Shown: positions 8,169-24,310 of the stretch, in pieces
Layout of the letters: every line of letters begins with the position of its first letter
Numbering within the stretch: the first letter of the stretch is position 1
DNA from: Guillardia theta CCMP2712
Lineage: Eukaryota; Protista; Cryptophyta
NCBI RefSeq assembly: GCF_000315625.1
Contig: NW_005434611.1
Coordinates: 425,649 to 464,478, forward strand
DNA: 38,830 bases
Direction of reading: 5' to 3'
Notes under the pieces: model-generated
Databases searched by the model: none
Told to the model about the DNA's origin: nothing
What the model saw: only the letters and a program-made list of their open reading frames with translations
Program-made: the position numbers and the translations under genes

Positions 8169-10082
8169 TTAGCTAGAGGGAGCAGCAGGAGCGCGGAGGA
8201 ACTTGAGGGAGGAGCTGACGCGACGAAGACTGACAGGAGGCCCAAGCAGAGCGAAGATGTCTGAAGAAGAACGTGAGAAGATGCGGAGGAGAAGATGCGG
8301 AGGAGAAGAGGGGGAGGGGAGCTAGGAGGAGGAGTCACCAGTGAGGGACGGGCCGCCGTCCTTTCCTGTCAGTGCGAGGCGAACAAATTTCATCATCGCT
8401 CCCTTGCTCATAGCCTTCGCTCCTGCTGCCTTCGCTGCCTTCCTCGCTTCCTCTATCAGCACGTCCAGTCCTCCTCCTTCCCTCCTCTCGGCTTGCTTCT
8501 GCAGCTCCTGCTCGAAGTTCTCTAGGTGTGCGATGACTTGCTCGCGAGCCTCGGCTGCCGTATGAGAAGCGAGGGCCTGAAGATAATGAGGCGGATTCTG
8601 AGGAGGGGGAGGAGGAGGAGGAGGAGGAGGGTAGAAGAGGATGAGAGAGAGGAGGGAGGATGGTAGGAGAGGGAGCAAGGAGAGGGAGTGGAAGCATCGG
8701 CACCTCAGGATCAGGGTCTGTCCAGAAGTAGAGAAATTGCGACAGTATCTCGCTCCTCCGCTCGACTCGCTCCACCACCGTCTTCACCACCTCCTCGAAG
8801 TACTTGTCGTCCTCCACCCGGTCGGCGAGGATCGGCTGGCCCGAGACCTTGACGAGCTCGCGCAGGCGAGGACCGAGCTCGAGCCACAAGCCTCTCCTGC
8901 CCTCCGAGTCCTGGCACATCCCCCGCAGCACCGACGTCTGGATGGAGCTGAACTTGCCGATGTCTACTCGCGTCCCATGCTTGTGTACCTGCAACAACCT
9001 CAGGTTCTTACTTTGCAAACCCCTCCCTTCCTTCTCCTGCTGCTCCTGCTCATGCCCCTAGTCCACCTGCTCCTCCTCTTCTTTTCCTCACCTTGGATAG
9101 ATCGAACTCTTCTATCAGTTCCTTGACAGTCATGATCTCCTTGGAGGGAGTGAAGCCCATGCTCGCCGTGTAGCTCAAGATCTGCTGAGGGTCAACGATA
9201 AAGCCTCTCCCTCCTCCTCTCCCTCACCGCCTTCATCTCGAAGCCCTGGCGCACGAAACTCTCAACGGTCCCATGCTCGTGCCTGCAGGAGCATCAGACT
9301 GCAGGAGCTCTCCTCGCCTCGACCTCTTGGAGAGTTTCCCGCCGTCAGGGTTGAGCAGGAGGGGCAGGTGAGCGAATGGAGGGGGAGGGTGTCCAAGGGC
9401 CCTGTGGAGGAGGATGTGCTTGGGAGCGGAGGAGAGCCACTCCTCGCCTCGGATGACGTGCGAGATGCCCATGTTCTGGTCGTCCACCACGCTTGCCAGG
9501 TGATAAGTCGGCAGCCCGTCAGACTTGACGAGGATGGCATCATCCACCTTGCTTGGGGATCACAACTCGCCCTCGCACCAGGTCCTCCACCTCAGCCTCT
9601 CCCAGCTGCTGCAGCGCTCGCTCAGCATCTAGCCGGATCACTCCTCCTCCTCTTCTTCCTGCTCCTCCCAGGAGATCCTCAGCTGCTCGCCTCCGGAAGA
9701 CGAAGCTGCCAACGCGCGCTTCCTCTTCCTTCCGGTACCTCTCCACCTCCGCATCGTCATAGCTGCAGCGGTACGCCAACCCTGCCTGCTCCAGTCTTGC
9801 TGCTGCTGCTGCATAAAGCTCCTTCCTCTCTGACTGCACGTAGGGACCGTGATCGCCGCCTACTCCGTACCCCTCGTCGGGGCCTATGCCGGCATCTTGT
9901 AGCATACGGAGGAGGAGGGAGGCTGAGCCAGGGACAGTCCGTGCTGTGTCCGTGTCTTCAATGCGGAGGATGAAACGACCGCCATGCTTGCGCGCGAAGA
10001 GAAAGTTGTAGAGAGCCGTCCGCAGCCCTCCCAGGTGAAGCAAACCAGTAGGTGATGGCGCGAAGCGAACCCTCACCGTCAT
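8169..10082 (-). CDS. gltX: Glutamyl-tRNA synthetase, bacterial/organellar type (multi-exon; frame break near 9548)
   Basis: [28 protein letters not shown] (HIGH-like), [60 protein letters not shown] (KMSKS-like), and the anticodon-domain motif [14 protein letters not shown]. Confidence 0.93.
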
Positions 10083-10609
10083 GGCAGGGGATGAAGGGGA
10101 GGAGGAGACGTAGACACAGTGAGAGAAGTAAGGCGAGGGAGATGGAGGATGGTAAGGTAGACGCAGGGAGGGGGAGGAAGGGAGTGGAGGGAGGAAAGGA
10201 GAAATTGATGAGGGAATTGTGTGTACCAGAAAGCTGGGAGACCTCGTCAGGTTTTGAGTTCAGCTTGCCAGGTTGCCTTTCAGTTTTGCGGCCGGGCCGG
10301 GCAGGTGACCGCCGCGGCGGGTCCGGGCCCCGGGTCCGGATGATTATGAAGTTCGGAAGCGGATTGATAGGGCGGCAGGGCCGGGCCGCTCGGTAGTAGA
10401 GGCGATGGGAACTCAGAAGAAGAGCCGCCGGGTTTACTCAGTCGGACTCCCCGCAATCGAAGTCCTCAGGCTCGACTAAGTTGAGCGGTCGGTATCATGG
10501 GTGACCGTCGGACTCTCCGGGCCGCTGAGGCCCGGCAGTGAGGGCCCGGCCGGCTCCTCCTCAGTCTTGACTTATCCTCCTCCTCCTGACTTCTCTTCCT
10601 CTCGTTCCT

Positions 10610-13600
10610 TCAGGGAGGTCGCGGGAGATGCACCTGATAGTGGTTGGTCCGCACGTTGAGGATGCGGACGAATCTCGAGCCCTGCTCCTGCTGGGAGTGA
10701 GCTGGGGGACAAGCAGCAGAGCGAAGAGTAAAGCGGGGAGGAGGAGGAGGAGGAGGAGGAGGAGGAGGAGGAGGAGGAGGAGGAGGCAGGAGGATGAAGA
10801 TGAGGGTGAGGAAAAGGCAGGAGGAGGGAGAGGAGGACAAGTCTCACTCGGTTTCTGTCGTAGATGAATTCAGGGCGGATGGTTCGAGGATCGACAAGTC
10901 GCGTGAGATCACCTGCTCACCCCCTTCAGCTCCTCCTCGTGCTCCTGTATCTTCCTCCTCCACCTCCTCCACCAACACCACCACTTCCTTCCCCCGCTCC
11001 TCCTCCTCCTCCTCCTCCTCCTCTCCTCCTCCTCCTCCTCCTCCTCTCTTCTCGTCTCCTCTTCAGGTTCACCTTTCTTCGCCAAGAAGTCCTGGAGCTC
11101 TCGACGAGCTGCTGGGATCCAGCTGGGGATTTCCTTCATGACGAACGTGTCCTCGTCATTCACCGTCTCTCTGGTGAACCCAACGCTACAGCCAGAATAA
11201 GCCAGAGNNNNNNNNNNNNNNNNNNNNNNNNNNNNNNNNNNNNNNNNNNNNNNNNNNNNNNNNNNNNNNNNNNNNNNNNNNNNNNNNNNNNNNNNNNNNN
11301 NNNNNNNAGGAGGAGGAGGAGGAGGAGGAGGAGGAGGAGGAGGAGGAGGAGCACTTGCACCTTGCCATCAGGTCGCAACCTCCCTCCTTCTTCCCCACTC
11401 GCCGCTGAAAACCAGCGTTCCCTGCTCGAATGCTGCGAAACTTGTGGTCGTCCCGACTGCACATGCGTCAGCCGAGTAAACGATGGGTAGGCAGAGGAAG
11501 TCGAGGATGAGAAGTATGGACGAGGGAGGGAGGGAGTGAGTGAGAAAAGGGAGGAGGAGGAGGAGGAGGAGGAGGAGGAGGAGGAGGAGGAGGAGGAGGA
11601 TGAGGATGAGGAGGAGGATGAGGAGGGGGGGGGGGGGGAGGGGGGGGGTTAGAGCCAGCAGGTCTTGACCTGTCTAGGATATTGTTCAAGTACAGGAGGA
11701 CGGTGTCCACTGCCTCCCGAGCATCTTCCGAGCAAGAGCTCTTCTCCTCCAGCTCCTTGAGAGCTGGGGCCACGCTCCTGCCCCTGCATCAGTCTCCTCC
11801 TGCCCCTCCTCCTCGTTCAACCTCTTCACGTGCTCCTCGTCTTCCGGGCTCACGTCCTGCATCCTCCTTGAGCCTTCAGCGATGAGCTCCAGCGATTCAG
11901 TCTTGATGACCTGCCGTGCGATTTAGCTCAACGAGCTCTTCTTTACATGCTCCCCCTGCCGTCCCCTCACCCACCCGCTTCCTCCTCCTCCCTCTCCTTT
12001 CTCTTCTCCTCTCCTCGTCTCCAAGCTCATCTAGTCTTCCGCGATCTCTATCCCCCCTCCTTACTCCCTCCCCTCCATCCTCCCTGCTGCAGCTCACCTG
12101 CAGTCGGATCTTGTAGATGCGGCAGAGGGCATCGAGTTCGAGCTCGCCGAGGGGCATGAAGAACTTTTTCCCGCTGTCCTCCTGCTCCTCGAGCAGCGAC
12201 TTCATGTAGAGCTCAACCAGCTCCTCGTAGTCCACCAGCGACGGGTCTGCTCCCCCTAGCTGGACCTGTTGGTTCAGATCCACCACGACGCTCTGGAGGG
12301 AGGGAGGGAGGACGAAGAAATCCTCCAGCCCGAAGAGCAGGTCACAGTCGACGCTCAGCCAGAGCTGTAGCTGATTGAGCACGGCCTCACGGTACCCGCC
12401 ATCCTTCCTCATCAGCTCCACCGCGTCTCGCCTGAACTCCCCGGCACTCGCTGCCAGCGCAGGCTCCTCGTCCACCTGAGGAGGGAAGGATGGATGGAAG
12501 ATTCTTCTCGTCAGCAGAGGAGGCTACAAGAGGTTGAGGGTACGAGAGGAGGAGGAGGGTACGCGGAGGAGTTCACAGGAGGAGGACACAGATGGAGTAG
12601 GGTGCGGGAGGAGGAGGTGGTGGAGGGTACAGGAGGAGGAGGGTACAGGAGGAGGAGGGTACAGGAGGAGGAGCATACAGGAGGGTGAAGGGCGAGGGTT
12701 CACCTTCAAGCTCGGGTAGTACTTGAGTAGGGAGCTGAGCCCCAACCAAACAGCGTGCATCATGCAGTTGCCGTCGTCAGGTACGTCGGTGAAGAAGCTC
12801 CGCCATTTCACCCCCGTCGAGGCCTCGAAGTCTGCGGGAGCCACTGGCTCCTTGATCGACTCGATGTGCTGCTTCCTCGCCTCTTCCTTCTTCGCCTTCT
12901 CCTCCTCGTCCTGGTGCCTTCTAAGGCGTTCGGCTCGCTCGCACCCTCCCCATCCTCCGTTGAGGGCGAACAAAGTGTCATTCCCCCGGTACGCGACAAC
13001 TCCCACCGCCCAGTCCGTGAAGAGCAGGCGAGCGTTGAAGGGGAGGAGCTGGCGGAACTGGAAGGAGGCCTGGCAGGAGCTGACCTGGTCGGCCGAGGAG
13101 GAGTAGAGGTGCGCGTTCCACTTGTCCAGGTAGAGAGGAGAACGGGGAGGATCGACCACGAGGAAGAAGTTCGACAGACTGCTGAGGCTCTCTGGCTGCC
13201 CGTCCCCGAAGCTGACGGAGGCGAGGGGGGAGGGGGCGACCTGCCACTGCCTGAGGCTCCCGTCCTTGTCGAAGCAGGAGGTCTCGATGACAACCTCCGA
13301 GGGAGTCGAGGAGGCCAGCAGGAGGAGGTCAGCTGGGAAGTGCTGCATCTTGTTCACCCTCACGATGTCCCCGCAGCGGAGCTCTCGTCGCCCCTTCCGC
13401 TCCCAGACGTTCTTGCTGGTGTCCAACACCTCCACCTCCTCGTCCTTGTTCACATCGCGCTTGTCCTCCTCCTCCCCCCCCCCCTCCTCCTCCTGATCTT
13501 TCGGCTTCAGCATGTCAATCCTCTTCTTCTCTCCCAATCCCAGCACGCGCTTCAGCTGCTCGAGAGCTGCTCCGAAGAGCAACTTCATCCTCTCCAGCCC

Positions 13601-14503
13601 CTTCGAGTCCTCAGCTCCTCCCAGCCCCACGTCGCTAGGCCTGGCTGACGTCAGCTCAGCCAAGCACACACCATCCTTGTCTCCTTCCTTCAGTACCATC
13701 CTGTTCAACGAGAGCACTTCCCCACCGTCCTCGAGCACAGCCCACATGACCACCCCGGACTCGTAGTCACCGAACAGCAGGCGGCAGGCCAACTTCGTCC
13801 CGTCCTTGCTCTGCATCGTCTGAGTCGCCCAGGCCCAAGCAGGGACTCGCGCGTTGGAGGTGACGAGGAAGGTTCGGAGAGCGTCTGTCTCCATCTCCTC
13901 GTCGTACGTCTCGTTGAGGTAAGAGAGCTGAGGGCACAGGGAGTGAAGGCTCAGAGGGCAGAGCAGCTTCCACACCATCTCCTTGCTCGCCTTCAGCGTC
14001 TCACTCAACTGAAGGATCCCCGGGCGTGTCGCCATCCAGTCCTCGTCGCACAGAACAAACTTCACATCCCCCGGCCCAGGGCATGCCAGGTAGCCCCGGA
14101 CATTCCCCCTGACTTCGTCTAGGTGTTTGAACATCAAACTGCACCCGTCCTCTTGCGCAGCAGTCTCTCGCTTGTTGCCCGTCTCGTGCTTCTGGACCTG
14201 ACTGGATCCCTTCAAGAGAGACGCCTCATCCTCCTCCGTCGCTGCTGCCTCCATTCCCCCTCTCAAAACCAGTCTCGCTCTTCCCTCAAAAGACCATCCC
14301 CTGCCTCTCATCAACGGCCAACTTACTCCCTTCAGGCCTCCTCCACCCATCAACCATCCTTGCCCCCCTGCTCTCCCTACCCCTCCTACCCCTCCTACCC
14401 CTCCTACCCCTCCTGCTCCTCCTGCTCCTCCTGCTCCTCCTGCTCCTCGCCCCTCTCCCACCATCGCCATCAACAGAACGGCCGCCGGGATTCCACACCT
14501 CAT
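10610..14503 (-). CDS. OTU-family deubiquitinase with inserted PUB domain, degenerate P4-ATPase actuator domain and leader ending LVLRGG
   Basis: OTU motifs: DVPDDGNCMMHAV (Cys 12764-12766), FRRDAVELM, LGELELDALCRIYKIRLQV, RILNVRTNHY (His 10640-10642). PUB motifs: AVDTVLLYLNNIL, KFRSIRAGNAGFQRRV, GGCDLMASVGF. Actuator motifs: RCGDIVRV..FPADLLLLASS..WAVGVVAYRG. The exons join in frame through GT-AG introns; one intron spans an N gap. Confidence 0.75.
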
Positions 14504-14531
14504 CGCATTCGCCACCAAAAACTGCCCTCAT

Positions 14532-14615
14532 CCCCTCTATGACCTCTGGCCTCACCGTGGCACCCGGCCCCGGCCCCTCTATGACCTCTGGCCTCACCGT
14601 GGCACCCGGCCCCGG
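14532..14615. repeat. Perfect 42-bp tandem duplication upstream of the OTU gene
   Basis: CCCCTCTATGACCTCTGGCCTCACCGTGGCACCCGGCCCCGG x2. Confidence 0.9.
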
Positions 14616-15062
14616 CGGCGGCAGCGGCCCGCCGGGCCCGGGGTGGACTCAGCTCCACTGGCCGCGGGCGGCCGGTGGAGCTCACCGGTGCCGCAGTGCC
14701 CGGCTCAGCGGCTCGGAGCTACGCCGGACGGTGGGACCGTGGACATGGTGGAGCAGGGAGGGCCGGTGGAGTCGGACTCGGTGGCTGCACTGACAGGCTG
14801 CACGCGGCGGCACTCCGGCGGCCCGGGCAGTCCGTACGGTCCGACAGTGTGATCGGATCGGCCCGGCCCGGCGTCCGACCCGGCGCAGTCACCGGGCCGC
14901 GGCCCGCGCCGGGCCGGGGGCGGTCCCGGAGTCCGAGCCGACGGCGGACTCCGGGAAGCGGCGCCGGCGGCCGCGCCCGCCCCCCGCCCCCGGGCCCGGC
15001 GGCTGCGCCGGGCCCCGGCCCGCGGCGGCAGGCTCGGAACCGTCAGTGACTCGCGGTCGCAC
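14616..15062. repeat. GC-rich intergenic island rich in CCGG/GGCC/GACTC/GTCAC words
   Basis: The same composition recurs at about 10285-10560, 15620-15880, 17140-17710, 17940-18145, 24470-24830 and 32815-33130. Confidence 0.6.
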
Positions 15063-16013: not shown

Positions 16014-16439
16014 TCACGCATCATCATAAAATGTGAGGGTATCGTCAGAGCTCTCCATGTACATCTTGATCCATTCTTGGGTAAGGGGTAGTGCGCTTTC
16101 AACCCAAGAAGTTTCCGACGTTCTCCTGCGCTGCTTCGTAGAGCTGAGCTTGGTCTCCCTTGAATCCTCCCGTGTTCGTTTGATTTTCTTTGCTCTGCTT
16201 CTCTTGGGACGGCGATATGGCCAGCGATCGATTCCGAGCTTGCGACAGCTGTGCTTGAGTGCAGTGAGAGATATACCCAGCGCCCGTGCTGCTTTGAATT
16301 GCGGAATCGAGAAAAGTTTCTGCAACGTTGGCATGTCTACAGCTAGAGGACGTCTACCTTTGTAAACAATATGCCCTTGTCCTGACTTTCTTCGCGGGAA
16401 CAAGAGCACGTTCGGAGAGGAAGCAACAGAATCTGTCAT
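16014..16439 (-). CDS. RWP-RK transcription factor (141 aa)
   Basis: LQKLFSIPQFKAARALGISLTALKHSCRKLGIDRWPYRR, preceded by LLFPRRKSGQ. The ATG at 16439 was chosen because the longer ORF runs through a repeat. Confidence 0.9.
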   Translation of the reverse strand: MTDSVASSPNVLLFPRRKSGQGHIVYKGRRPLAVDMPTLQKLFSIPQFKAARALGISLTALKHSCRKLGIDRWPYRRPKRSRAKKIKRTREDSRETKLSSTKQRRRTSETSWVESALPLTQEWIKMYMESSDDTLTFYDDA

Positions 16440-16504
16440 GATGGCGCGGACTGAGTCTGAGTTTGAGGGCCCTTGCAAGGCTGCCTCGGGGAGAACTTGG
16501 AAAA

Positions 16505-16720
16505 GAGGAGGGGAGGATGTAGGATGAAGAGGAGGGGAGGATGTAGGATGAAGAGGGGGGAGGATGTAGGATGAAGAAGAAGGGAGGATGTAGGGTGAAG
16601 AGGAGGAGGGGAGGAGGGAGGATGAAGAGGAGGGGAGGAGGGGAGGATGTAGGGTGAAGTGGAGGAGGATGTAGGAAGAGGAGTAGGAGGAGGATGTAGG
16701 ATGAAGAGGAGGAGGAGGAG
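16505..16720. repeat. Degenerate ~24-bp minisatellite (GAGGATGTAGGATGAAGAGGAGGG)
   Basis: Several imperfect tandem copies upstream of the RWP-RK start. Confidence 0.8.
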
Positions 16721-18146
16721 GAGGGAGGGAGGGGAGCAGGCGAGAGCTGCCAGGTTCAAGGAGCTGATCTCCGAGGGAGGGGATTGGGTTTTTAAAAACG
16801 ATTGTTTTACAGCACACCCTTCATCTCGAAACGACGAGATACCACGAGATTTCAAGAACCTCATGTTCCCGATTTCAAGTTGACTAATATAAACAGTACT
16901 GCAGGGGACGTTAGCTTGATTTGTTTTTAACGGTTGTCACGTTCGCGTCTGTGCGGTGACTAGGGCAGCAACTCTCATATAGGAGCTCCACTAGGCGTCC
17001 TAGCCTGCTGCCCTTATCATTAGGTATTTTACCACAGGACGGCCTCCACTGCCGACGTGACCGAAACTCAGACCGTGACTCGGAAATCTCTTTGTTTTTT
17101 TTTCACATTGACTGTCAACTAAAGAATTTACTCATCTCCCAGCTGGCTGCTCCTGGACCGTCCGGTGAGGCTGCTCAGTCACGGCACAGTCTGACCACAT
17201 GACGGCGACTGCAATCAGTCACGCTCACACCGACTGGTCTCACCGGGTCACAATGAGTCACGGCCGGGCCCGGCGTCCTGACTGTCAGTGTGATGGCTCA
17301 GGGCCCGGGGCGGCCGCTAGTAGCTACGCGGCGGCCCGGCGTCACGTCCCGAGTCCCGGAGTCCGCGGCGCCCGGCCAGGCCTAGTAGGGGGCACCCCGG
17401 GCCGGGCCGGGTCCCGAGCGCGGCGGCCCGGCCCCGGCGGCGGCCGCAAGCGGCCCGGCGGGCCCAGCCCTCAGTCAGGCGTCACTGGCCGTCAGGCTGC
17501 TACCGTCGGACTCCGGCGAAAGTCTGGCCTGCGGCAGGTAGTACGGAAGTACAGTTTGACTTAGGCCGAGAGTCCCTGCTCGCCGATGATCGGATGTACG
17601 CGTGCCCGGCCGGCGGGGTACGGTACTGACTGGCACTCAGGGCGCCGGTCGGATCCGACATTCAAGCCTGGCGTTGTCACGTGACTCTGTGCCATGATGC
17701 CACCGTGACAGAGTACTACAATCTTGATTTGTTAGATCGGACTTGTATTATGCCAAACGGTAACTTGAATGCAGACACTGGCAGTTGACCTCAGCTGCAA
17801 CAACTTGTGACAGTTTTTGCTGGAGTTTGATGCACACGAAACTAGGATCATTCCTGTTGAGGAGCACATGAGAGTTAGCCTTGTGACTGTATGCTAGGAT
17901 GTGCAACCCAAGCAAATATCTGACTGGAACGGCTGGCATCACCGAGCCGCAGTGAGCTGCTGGAGGCGGCCTGATACCGCCCACCGTGACAGAGCCCGGA
18001 GTCAAGTTGCCGAGACGGGCCGCGCCGTCACACTACGAGTATTCGCCGGCGCCGGCCATGACTGTACAGTGACTGGACACTAGGAGTCGATACGATCCAT
18101 CACGAGTATGAGCTTCTTCGAGTGGCGCGGCAGCCCGGGAACTGAG

Positions 18147-20769: not shown

Positions 20770-23659
20770 ATTGCCTGTCATCAACCTCTCAGACACAGTG
20801 TGATGTGAATGATCTTGCGCTCTACTACTGGCTGTATAGCTCCCCACTGCCTGCTACGCCGGGTGCCCTACCGTCTACTAATCTCTCTTTACACAGCATC
20901 CTCAGGGTTCCTCGCTTTCTCTTGATCTATGTCATACCCTCCTCTGTTCATCTCACCTTCCTCACTCCTTCCTCTTCCTATGTTGGCAAACCGACTCTAT
21001 TCTTCGACGAGCTCGCTCCACCAGTCTCCTCCTCACCTTGACCCGCCATTTGCACCGCCCACAACAGTCGCTTCGTTTTTTTTGTGCTTTCTTTCTTTCT
21101 TTTTATCGTAAAACTCCAGGCCGGCCGGGCCTGGACGGTAGTTACTTTACTGAAAGGAAGACTGCCGGGAACTGCCGGGTGCTGCTAGCTAGCAGAACAG
21201 GAGCAACACCAGCATCACAAAACGCAACCAATAAAACACTTTTTAAAAAAAAGTCTTTAGGAACAATAATAAAAGTAATTTAATTCATTACCGCTGCCTT
21301 TGCCCATGTTTGGAGACAGTATCATAGGATAACTAAAACTAATATAGAACTGACATTTCATTACCAAGAATCATACAAATATTTGTAAACCCTTTTGAGC
21401 TTTCTGAGTTACCCGGGGCTGGTACACAACAAACTGGGGGAACAGAAGCGGACCATATGTGAAAGTAACTTATTTCAGATCCTGGCTTCGTAGTAAACTT
21501 GGGGAACAGCCCCTGCAGGAGGCCAGGGGTTGACTTGAGCTTTATAGTGAAGAAACACGGGGAATAATCATAACCCCTACCTCTTTCTGACACACTTGAT
21601 TGGACCCGTGATTGAAGCTTGATACCCTGACTTGACTATATCAGTTCCTAAAACCTTTTGTAAATTCCTCCACCCTACCCCGGCTGTCTGTGCTGATGCT
21701 TTTCTATCACCCCCTTTGGCCACTGTTTTCCCCCAGTTGACCCCCCACCCCCCTCAAAATCATCATGACCCTACCGCCTGTCTGTACCACCCACTTTCTC
21801 AAACAATCTTATACCTCTTTCTACCTTGTGTACAGAAACGCATACTTTCTAAGTGATAACACTATGATAAAATCAATACCCTTCAAACATTCTGTTCACA
21901 CCTCCCCCACTCCCCACAATCTTCACATGCTCGTCGCTCTCTCTCTCAGGGTACCACCCAGGGACCAACGAAAATGTCCCTGGAGGGCAGCTCTGTTATT
22001 CCTCCTATACTACCCCCTACCCCCCTAAAATGAAGTAGTACGGATTCGAAATGACCCCCTTATTTGAGTCAAACTGAACCCTACCCACTGGGAGGAGTCT
22101 GCGCTTACAGCCAGTGCTCCTCTTCCCCAATTGGGACCAAAACATATAAAACTTTGTTTTTCATAATTCCGCTACAGGTTGGCTGGCGTTGTAGGGGCCC
22201 TCAAAGCCCAAGCAGACATCCTTGAGGATTGTATATGTAAACTTAAAGAAAATTGGGCTATCATTGAAGCTTTGGATCAATTGCAGCGCCTTCCTACCAT
22301 CGGACACGCTATTGATAACTTCGTCACAAACCAACTCACATATACCCCTGCATATAAAATTCTGATCATCCTACAAGTGTTTTGAAACGTATATGTATTA
22401 TTCAATGCTACTGAATTGGTTCACAGAGAGTAGGGAAACGTTTTTTAATGAATATTAAAAAATATAGTTTTTCAATAACTTTCTCCAACAAAGCTTTGTA
22501 CCGTCTCTGAAATCTTAAAACGTGGAAGCGTTTTATAGACTGTACCTAAGTTTTCTGATTCCCAAAAGACTGTTTCTGATCCCTATCACTTTGAAGTGTG
22601 CGGTACAAACTAAACCAATTTTGTATGGAGACTTTGGTACTGTGTTCCCAACGATTGACCTTCATAAAACAAATTTAAGTAATCGGAGGGTTGTAACTTG
22701 CCATAAAGGATCTCGAGCACCCACCCCTGATTGTTTGCGATCTGGGGACGGGTACGGAAACTCCTCTGCACACCTCGATTGTGGCAAGTGCTTAAAGTTT
22801 TGTTGTTTTCAATGTTTAGTACCCGTCATCATCTAACCACAATTGATACAAAAGCATGGTGGGGTAGTACAAGACTTTCACAACTTTGAATGTCAATGTG
22901 TCCCAGGCCAAACTTTCAACACGAGGGATAAAAAAATCGATGGGGCATAGCCCACGACCACCCTACCCATTTCATTCATTCTTCGGTACCCACCATTAAC
23001 TTGGACACTGATCTCATGGAAAATAGTTGGGTAGCTAAATACCCACCCTGGTATTTAGCAACTGTGATGAGACTACCCCACCTATCCATTACCACTGGGA
23101 TACAGGGGGGTTAACTGACTGGTCTCATTGCAAACCGACGTCCAAGGGGGTGACGGCACCACCCACCCTCCAATACGCCATTAGGTATTGGAAACACTAC
23201 GGGATCCGACCGCCTGGCCGACCCCCTGAATACGTAAGTCCTGCTGAATCTTAAACAATTGCTTTTATAATCTGCTACAAAATGGAATATAAAAGACAAT
23301 ATAAAGAATTTATATGTAATATAAATGTTTTTCCATGTTTTTTGAAGCTCCTGAGATATTTTCATTGGGCCTGGTAACGGGTGTCAGAAGACTTTTAGGT
23401 TGTAAAACTATTTTATCTCTACAATCCAAGTTTTTGAGAACTCCTTATTCACCCTGACCTCTCCCCCCCTCCGTCACCCTCTACTCTTACCCCGTTTGCA
23501 TCCACGCGCACCACCTGTCCTTGGTCTCCTCTTTCTTGTTTTGCTTTGGCTTTCCCTCCCTCCCTCCGTCTCTTTTGCCTTGTCCTTGTCTTTGTTCATA
23601 TTCCTGTTTCGAGAAATCTACCCTGTTCAATTTATTCCATTCCATCACCGAACGACGAA

Positions 23660-24310
23660 ATGAAAATCTTTGCACTGGCGGTGTTGTTTGCCTTGGCCAT
23701 GCCTGTGACTGCGTTGAACTACCAGAGCGTGCAGCCGGCATACACAGCGCAGGCTTCTGCATACGATATGAATCAGATCCATTCTCTCCCAGTGCCAAAG
23801 AACATGGAGCAGGATTATCGTGAAATGCGCATTGGTACCCCCTACGATGAGGAAGAAATGTACCACGTTGCCCGTGTTGCCTCCATTCGTGGTGGTATGG
23901 GTGAGATTGAAGACTTTGAGAGCGAATACAAGAGCATGAGAATGGGCAATGTCTTCGAGGACAACGAGATGTTTTCAGCTCCACGCGTGGAATCAATGCG
24001 CGGTGGGGCGGCTCCCCACCACACTTCTTCGTTTTACGAGAACCAGTACTCGCAGTATAGAATTGGCTCTGTATTCGAAGATGAGCTTCCTGCTCCCGCA
24101 CCGGCTGGCTTCAAGAGAAGCCTTTCACTCCGTGGAGGAGGAGCTGATGACTTCGAGAAGGAATACCGGGAGATGAGGATGGGCTCCTTGTTCGATGAGA
24201 ACGAGATGGAGGCTCCTCGCATCGATTCTCTCCGTGGTGGTGGTGAGGTCAATTCAAAGGATGTTGAGAAGAGCTATTCGGAACTGCGCATCGGCTCTGT
24301 CTTTGATTAA
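23660..24310 (+). CDS. Signal-peptide repeat polyprotein (216 aa): five YxxxR[IM]Gxx[FY][DE] modules separated by four S[ILM]RGG motifs
   Basis: Intronless ORF from ATG 23660. MKIFALAVLFALAMPVTA is signal-peptide-like. The repeats are conserved as protein but diverged as DNA. Confidence 0.85.
   Translation: MKIFALAVLFALAMPVTALNYQSVQPAYTAQASAYDMNQIHSLPVPKNMEQDYREMRIGTPYDEEEMYHVARVASIRGGMGEIEDFESEYKSMRMGNVFEDNEMFSAPRVESMRGGAAPHHTSSFYENQYSQYRIGSVFEDELPAPAPAGFKRSLSLRGGGADDFEKEYREMRMGSLFDENEMEAPRIDSLRGGGEVNSKDVEKSYSELRIGSVFD

Follow-up and report, generated by a model that had tools for sequence, protein, structure and literature searches.

The window, i.e., the whole stretch of 38,830 nucleotides of Guillardia theta CCMP2712 that was analyzed, contains on its minus strand a gene for an unusual protein of the OTU type. 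Its predicted product starts with an 83-residue extension, referred to as the leader, that ends in LRGG and is followed by an acidic sequence. The features of this 5' part of the gene are as follows.

12524-14518, minus strand: open frame of the OTU gene; Met1 at 14501-14503 is the first ATG past an in-frame stop.
14456-14503, minus strand: Met1 to Gly16, the part of the leader that resembles the start of a signal peptide, with an in-frame stop just upstream and a hydrophobic core.
14267-14455, minus strand: transit-peptide-like part, residues 17 to 79, basic, Gly-rich, and almost without acidic residues.
14367-14448, unstranded: 9-bp CCT-rich microsatellite, in frame, encoding the (GAG)n(GVG)n run of the leader.
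14255-14266, minus strand: LRGG, codons 80 to 83, conserved leader end and putative processing site.
14252-14254, minus strand: Met84, adjoining LRGG, a possible alternative start that is not conserved.

On translation of positions 14252 to 14518 (minus strand), all elements described in an earlier note on this DNA were recovered, namely, a hydrophobic N terminus, a Gly/Arg-rich stretch, LRGG at codons 80 to 83, a Met residue, and the switch to acidic sequence. As judged by a hydrophobicity heuristic, the best 10-residue Kyte-Doolittle mean of the core is 2.48, compared to 2.6 to 3.1 for the leaders of orthologues and 2.0 to 2.7 for the signal peptides of cryptophyte LHC proteins. The 83 residues include 32 Gly, 9 K+R, and 2 D+E. 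Past the hydrophobic core, the sequence continues with G/E/G/R and is devoid of F, Y, W, and L, which makes its start non-aromatic. The end of the leader reads LVLRGG, Met84 follows, and 5 of the next 20 residues are acidic. The microsatellite behind the glycine-rich run has a period of 9, 9.1 copies, and 91% matches, and it is missing from the orthologues. When the leader was shuffled, [LIMV]RGG appeared anywhere in 27% of the sequences but at the very end in only 0.4%; given the rate of 27%, the motif in this leader is weak evidence if taken by itself. A ubiquitin-like domain was rejected as an identity of the leader, which is of low complexity, not conserved, and without a Pfam family or a beta-grasp fold; the tail motif alone is shared with ubiquitin.

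The evidence that carries more weight comes from relatives of the protein. An exhaustive HMMER search with the region after the motif (12704-14254, minus strand) as the query resulted in 218 relatives. Four orthologue lineages (P0021/P0151, P0152, P0160/P0157, and P0164), located on metagenome contigs of uncultured eukaryotes that presumably are cryptophytes, align to the query from residue 2 on. Their N-terminal extensions comprise 64 to 71 residues, are particular to each lineage, and are unrelated to one another; in each, a distinct hydrophobic core is followed by basic sequence and by a G/S-L-R-G-G end, immediately before the conserved acidic start. In the alignment of G. theta with the four lineages, L80, R81, G82, and G83 are invariant across all five, and pairwise identity amounts to 26% in the leader ahead of the motif versus 45% in the domain behind it. 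The expectation of finding the motif after shuffling was only 1 to 4.5% for each orthologue's own leader. Because LRGG is conserved across the orthologue lineages, the motif goes beyond chance. The orthologues have Gly or Ser at the position of Met84, and, since this Met is not conserved, translation from it cannot be the general form; as the main form in G. theta, it appears unlikely from the sequences compared. The earlier note had named a translation start at the Met after LRGG as an outcome that would speak against a presequence, and the orthologues, with Gly or Ser at this site and the upstream signal peptide retained, speak against it as the main form. Its proposal of a genuine presequence, made up of a signal peptide plus a transit-peptide-like part, is in contrast supported by the retention of this layout and of LRGG, and the OTU leader is very likely to be translated. 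Leaderless homologues of the OTU protein do exist elsewhere in the family.

We then compared these data with other proteins of the periplastid compartment (PPC) and the nucleomorph. A single nucleus-encoded, nucleomorph-targeted H2A with a bipartite leader has been reported for G. theta (Onuma 2017, PMC5443833). The nucleomorph H2A is a divergent copy on contig C4 with a strong signal peptide, and its leader ends at residue 55 with LRLRGG, which is identical to the last six residues of ubiquitin. PPC predictions for G. theta aaRS copies are available from Gile et al. (PMC4494062), who predicted cytosolic, mitochondrial, and PPC copies of AspRS. The PPC-type AspRS copy (C19) has a signal peptide and a leader that ends with CLRGG, whereas copy C13 lacks a leader and copy C25 has a mitochondrial-type presequence. 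The nearest foreign orthologue of the PPC AspRS (P0174) carries an unrelated leader that again terminates in LVLRGG and is followed by acidic sequence. In the PPC-type copy of TrpRS (C28), a signal peptide and a 38-residue leader are present, and RLRGG is placed directly before the conserved TrpRS N terminus. For TyrRS on C32, an upstream ORF ending in KLRGG is probably its leader.

Several sets of sequences served as controls. No such leader was found on cytosolic and mitochondrial AspRS, cytosolic AsnRS, the five other H2A genes, or other class-Ib aaRS loci, including the class-Ib synthetase loci examined on C48 and C8. Among 120 cryptophyte LHC proteins from the protein database, [LIMV]RGG occurred in none (0/120) at any position; for the subset of 52 precursors with a Met start and an ASAF-type signal peptide, it was thus missing from the first 110 residues in 52/52. 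The transit peptides of LHC proteins have a different end pattern, ...GPxMQ, and a Phe of the ASAF type at the start. In the G. theta DNA examined, signal-peptide-like ORFs with the motif were confined to the genes above plus one unknown ORF (L037) in a random stretch. In a 200-kb genome sample together with the window, 3 of 133 signal-peptide-like ORFs contained [LIMV]RGG, against 0 to 3 for permuted motifs, the sample being small. The suggestion in the earlier note that RGG-ended leaders are shared by a set of proteins thus holds for H2A, AspRS, TrpRS, and probably TyrRS, whereas the genome sample is too small to speak for enrichment. The sequences support the view that the LRGG end is not specific to the OTU protein but is an ending common to leaders of proteins with a predicted or published targeting to the PPC or the nucleomorph; the motif-positive set is small and comprises four to five protein families.

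The sites that were compiled from these leaders have a number of properties in common. (i) The leaders are basic, with 4 to 11 K+R and 0 to 3 D+E in 9/11 cases, and the following 20 residues are acidic (4 to 6 D+E in 9/11). (ii) At 15 sites, not all of which are independent, R-G-G is invariant, P4 is Leu in 12/15, P6 is hydrophobic in 11/15, and P1' is small. (iii) The tail of ubiquitin is L71-x-L73-R-G-G, and P6 of the motif corresponds to L71. The leaders thus end with hydrophobic-x-L-R-G-G, which, at the level of sequence, is a copy of the ubiquitin tail. We consider LRGG to be most likely the place at which the leader would be removed after import, and the strict R-G-G together with the Leu at P4 would speak more for a ubiquitin-type cysteine protease than for a metallopeptidase dependent on Arg at -3 or for a signal that serves sorting alone. 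The literature searched (periplastid + LRGG) yielded no defined end motif for PPC leaders, and the papers on targeting prediction mention none; the search found no publication on N-terminal sequencing of cryptophyte PPC proteins either.

The gene, which is present as a single copy in the G. theta assembly, continues behind the motif with several domains. Each exon of the spliced gene model was searched separately; the features are as follows.

13658-14251, minus strand: acidic start and conserved N-terminal domain; no Pfam family; orthologues are 45% pairwise identical.
12911-13471, minus strand: module resembling the actuator (A) domain of P4-ATPases, based on a profile match to Dnf2 7ky5_A, Foldseek, and a weak match to PF00122.
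12704-12790, minus strand: start of the OTU domain with the catalytic Asp and Cys; DDGNC at 12764-12778; the exon ends at 12704 with a GT donor.
12098-12475, minus strand: exon 2, which encodes the helical portion of the OTU domain, with in-phase AG/GT borders and collinearity to P0001, P0010, and L052.
11341-11467, minus strand: PUB-domain fragment inserted in the OTU domain; PF09409, E value of 6e-4, 20.1 bits, 42 amino acids.
11204-11307, unstranded: assembly gap (N run) in the PUB region, which leaves the G. theta gene model incomplete.
10613-10690, minus strand: final exon, which encodes N-H-Y, the His motif of the OTU domain (His codon at 10640-10642); stop at 10610-10612; L052 ends alike.

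The actuator-like module covers residues from about 345 to 530. A profile of the family matched Dnf2 (7ky5_A) with an E value of 7.5e-22, profile positions 42 to 230 being aligned with Dnf2 residues 419 to 593, and Foldseek returned flippase A domains with an E value of 1e-10. The other P4-ATPase domains (membrane, phosphorylation, and nucleotide-binding) were found neither in the ORF nor in its homologues, and a full P4-type ATPase, i.e., a flippase, was excluded as an identity, since the match is limited to the actuator-like part.

The assignment of the catalytic part to the OTU fold is based on conserved residues and on a structural model. D-G-N-C does not vary across the family alignment (A3), and N-H-Y is almost invariant; by sequence, the protein thus possesses the arrangement that defines OTU enzymes (MEROPS C85), with Asp and Cys in D-x-x-C and a His near the C terminus. 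The Pfam OTU profile (PF02338) did not match the exons in the window, which is due in part to the split into exons and to the large insert, and the family member that comes closest, P0014, reached 17.9 bits at a cutoff of 23.3. PDB sequences, searched with a profile of the OTU part, gave no match either. The structure of the homologue P0001 (residues 205 to 490) was predicted with a pLDDT of 86 and a pTM of 0.82, and VIA-align of this model returned OTU domains in 50/50 listed rows, including OTUD1 (Z score of 9.7, root mean square deviation of 3.0 over 128 residues), OTUD3 (Z score of 9.6), OTUD2 (Z score of 7.7), and nairovirus OTUs (Z scores of 7.5 to 8.1). The best 50 Foldseek matches of the same model were all OTU domains as well, with weak E values (1.8e-3 at best). 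The window protein shares 36 to 51% identity with its homologues and, by homology to the P0001 model, has an OTU fold. The identity as an OTU-fold enzyme given in the earlier note is thus supported as far as the predicted model of the homologue and the presence of Asp, Cys, and His are concerned.

The PUB domain lies behind the helical part of the OTU domain and ahead of its His strand. The fragment in the window scores 20.1 bits at a Pfam cutoff of 34.3, the domain being split by introns and the assembly gap. In the collinear orthologue L052 (4204-5019), it is complete and exceeds the cutoff (51.1 bits, E value of 1.3e-13), so that the insert is present in at least two lineages, G. theta and L052. 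Other family members include P0005, with a UBA domain elsewhere in the protein, and P0006, with an OTU domain that encloses a RanBP2-type zinc finger; the occurrence of these domains in relatives would fit an enzyme of the ubiquitin system.

Comparison with known systems places the protein close to the OTU enzymes that act at Cdc48. Otu1, YOD1 (OTUD2), and Arabidopsis OTU1 have roles at Cdc48 in ERAD, as cited in PMC10795397. They resemble the window protein in the OTU fold, the Asp/Cys/His triad, and a dedicated module for Cdc48 binding, predicted in the window protein, beside the catalytic domain, and, by analogy, the expected job would be alike, i.e., stripping ubiquitin from substrates drawn through an ERAD-type channel. 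The module here is a PUB domain inside the OTU domain, whereas those enzymes have an N-terminal UBX-like domain. Unlike these enzymes, the protein also possesses the actuator-like domain and an N-terminal plastid-type presequence, and in sequence it is too far from known OTUs to reach the Pfam threshold. Among plastid-associated deubiquitinases (DUBs), diatom ptDUP is a USP of the Ubp15/UBP12 type that is missing from cryptophytes (PMC12412216), and Toxoplasma TgOTU7 and Plasmodium PfOTU are OTU enzymes (PMC10795397). What the window protein, a predicted DUB, has in common with these three is its plastid-type leader and its occurrence in an organism (alga or parasite) whose plastid imports via SELMA; as judged by description, TgOTU7 and PfOTU are not reported to have a PUB insert, an A-like domain, or a leader ending in RGG.

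The leader itself has two counterparts. It agrees with the bipartite PPC signals of cryptophytes (Gould/Gruber criterion) in the signal-peptide-like core, the basic stretch poor in acidic residues, and the non-aromatic start, a layout that has been published for PPC and nucleomorph proteins (PMC5443833 and PMC4494062); the defined C-terminal end motif is additional here and undescribed in the literature searched. The second counterpart, pointed out in the earlier note, is the junction of polyubiquitin and ubiquitin fusions (...LRLRGG|M). The likeness is real in that hydrophobic-x-L-R-G-G precedes the start of a new chain, with LVLRGG|M in the OTU leader and all six residues identical in the H2A leader. 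The leaders differ from polyubiquitin in being disordered, basic, and not conserved, without a ubiquitin fold ahead of the junction; only the tail is copied.

From these data, we consider it reasonably probable that the gene encodes a PPC presequence with a conserved, ubiquitin-tail-like end, which would be a probable processing site, on a protein that is probably a deubiquitinase associated with Cdc48 in SELMA, the import machinery derived from ERAD. According to this reading, the 83-residue extension would be translated as a bipartite presequence, in which a basic transit-peptide-like stretch comes after a signal peptide, and would direct the OTU-PUB protein to the PPC. There, the leader may be cut off after import at the GG of LRGG, the peptidase being putatively a cysteine protease of the ubiquitin type. 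The PUB insert would tie the OTU enzyme to the Cdc48 of SELMA. By analogy to the enzymes discussed above, the mature protein is most likely a SELMA deubiquitinase associated with Cdc48, for which both the activity and the Cdc48 binding are predicted. In a 2025 survey, cryptophytes were without ptDUP and without the PUB protein s_PUB (PMC12412216); an OTU-PUB protein with a PPC-type leader is therefore a concrete candidate for carrying out deubiquitination, the step that is missing in SELMA.

What is new here, as far as the sequences tell, is that leaders of a known targeting class bear a defined end motif of the ubiquitin-tail type, here on an unusual OTU-PUB enzyme. This bears on the manner in which PPC leaders are recognized and removed and on the features, beyond the first residue, by which they differ from the leaders of plastid-stroma proteins. 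The motif may also point to a ubiquitin-type protease as the processing enzyme. As a conserved and simple sequence mark for the PPC, it should improve the prediction of PPC proteins, the number of which is estimated at roughly 2,400 in G. theta (PMC4494062, citing Curtis 2012).

Other explanations were weighed against the favored one. The least probable of these, which we regard as very improbable, is that the main protein is made without the leader, with translation starting at Met84 or with the motif removed by splicing; the enzyme would be cytosolic, and LRGG would have arisen by chance in a Gly/Arg-rich microsatellite region. The adjoining Met, the frequency of the motif in shuffled leaders, and the microsatellite origin of the glycine-rich core agree with this possibility, as do the single gene copy and the leaderless homologues, in that a cytosolic form might be needed. 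In addition, there is a canonical GTAAGT at 14326, which, paired with in-frame AGs, would define an intron of 42 nt that keeps LRGG or an in-frame interval of 78 nt whose removal would eliminate it. The acceptor of the 78-nt interval is, however, poor and without a pyrimidine tract, the first ATG runs at once into the signal-peptide-like core, and the orthologues retain the signal peptide and LRGG but not the Met. A different possibility, rather doubtful in our view, is that the motif is real but is read by something other than a DUB, either a metallopeptidase of the MPP/SPP type that uses the Arg at -3 or, without any cleavage, a sorting or retention element of the PPC. Arg at -3 is a known class among mitochondrial processing sites, and the motif sets PPC-type leaders apart from LHC leaders with their ...GPxMQ end, as would be expected for a sorting signal. 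On the other hand, peptidases of the MPP/SPP type do not require two invariant glycines at -2 and -1, the likeness to ubiquitin extends to the Leu at P4 and the hydrophobic residue at P6, and the sharp charge switch at the motif and its place directly before conserved mature sequence resemble a junction.

It is also conceivable, but unlikely, that, as the earlier note suggested, the OTU protease itself is the presequence peptidase and cuts behind RGG in the PPC leaders, in a neighboring protein with four such sites, and in its own leader, because the leader end mimics the ubiquitin tail. Since its leader is of the same type, the enzyme is expected in the right compartment; it has an OTU fold with Asp, Cys, and His, and the invariant R-G-G with a small P1' would suit the tight channel in which ubiquitin-like proteases accommodate Gly-Gly. 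Polyprotein cleavage at xxGG and deubiquitination are combined in arterivirus PLP2, tymovirus PRO, and coronavirus PLpro, so that viral OTU-fold and papain-like proteases offer, by analogy, a precedent for an enzyme with a DUB fold that cuts a linear motif resembling the ubiquitin tail; these proteases act on their own polyproteins, and their relation to the window protein is a common fold alone. The absence of ptDUP from cryptophytes (PMC12412216) would leave room for such an enzyme. Several points argue against it. Cellular OTUs usually need the folded body of ubiquitin and act on isopeptide bonds, and the leaders are without a ubiquitin fold. Leaderless homologues exist in the same family, and the core job of the family is therefore not leader removal. 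There is another DUB candidate for the PPC, a Ufm1-peptidase-like protein that is nucleomorph encoded and conserved in cryptophytes (PMC6559170), and genomic proximity is no evidence in a eukaryote. That the OTU-PUB protein combines all these functions, as the missing SELMA deubiquitinase, the Cdc48 adaptor, and the presequence peptidase for PPC leaders including its own, appears quite improbable to us; if true, the removal of PPC leaders would have evolved by copying the tail of ubiquitin onto targeting peptides.

The neighboring protein with several sites deserves a separate comment, as its closeness to the OTU gene had been taken to hint at a functional pair. We rejected gene proximity as a sign of such a pair: the distance of 9 kb has no weight because other genes lie between the two and unlinked contigs carry the motif as well. 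The count given in the earlier note was reproduced, with [ILM]RGG occurring four times in the plus-strand ORF 23546-24310, at about 9 kb from the OTU gene. The corresponding feature of the window is the following.

23660-24310, plus strand: neighboring signal-peptide protein with four [ILM]RGG sites, functionally unlinked as far as shown.

RGG endings, that is, the [LIM]RGG close of periplastid-type leaders that resembles the ubiquitin tail and is a putative processing site, were also found on two further proteins of G. theta, encoded in the fetched stretches L010 and L037:

L010 430-600 (G000:C4 about 101180), plus strand, leader of nucleomorph histone H2A, a nucleus-encoded protein
L037 615-1148 (G000:C5:500615-501148), minus strand, ORF of 178 residues with a leader ending in RIRGG

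The H2A leader closes with LRLRGG, the same six residues with which ubiquitin ends, and in the gene this leader end is followed by an intron and then by the histone fold. The L037 ORF, located in a stretch picked at random, contains a signal-peptide-like core, the RIRGG leader end, and then acidic sequence; it matched no Pfam family and may be a further periplastid protein. In cryptophyte LHC precursors (P0293-P0412), the transit peptides have in common that they end, ahead of the mature protein, in a ...R-G-P-x-M-Q pattern, which may correspond on the plastid side to the RGG ending.

The following features concern the domains of the OTU protein and of L052, its metagenome orthologue:

window 12911-13471, minus strand, P4-type flippase actuator (A)-like domain (profile match to Dnf2, E 7.5e-22)
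window 12953-12967, minus strand, ALNGG, the G. theta counterpart of an internal [LI]RGG of homologues
L052 4204-5022, plus strand, complete PUB domain (PF09409, E 1.3e-13) in one exon

According to the profile match, the OTU protein carries the actuator domain of P4-type lipid flippases as a soluble copy, and it contains no ATPase domain besides this one. The fusion of the actuator-like and OTU domains is common to the entire family of relatives found with HMMER. In L052, the PUB domain interrupts the OTU domain after its helical part and before the His strand; since it is complete there, the insert is conserved and does not stem from a faulty assembly of the window.

In several leaderless homologues (P0005, P0012, P0013, P0038, and P0052), [LI]RGG closes the actuator-like domain and directly precedes a long helix that runs to the OTU domain. 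Such a second ubiquitin-tail-like motif, within a DUB, may be due to chance or may be an internal pseudo-substrate.

The surroundings of the OTU gene comprise:

window 14519-15050, 17199-17564, and 10400-10560, stretches of very high GC content (about 69%) that contain repeats of the CCGGCCC type
window 16014-16817, minus strand, ORF with an RWP-RK-like motif (…RWPYR…), read by eye
window 9540-10082, minus strand, glutamyl-tRNA synthetase (GluRS)-like first exon

The RWP-RK-like ORF separates the OTU gene from that of the four-site protein, and the two RGG genes are thus not neighbours. The GluRS-like exon begins straight at the catalytic core and lacks a signal peptide, consistent with the published absence of a periplastid GluRS. 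One GC-rich stretch adjoins the OTU gene upstream; since such stretches recur elsewhere in the window, they may represent a dispersed repeat. A perfect 42-bp tandem duplication is present at window 14532-16.
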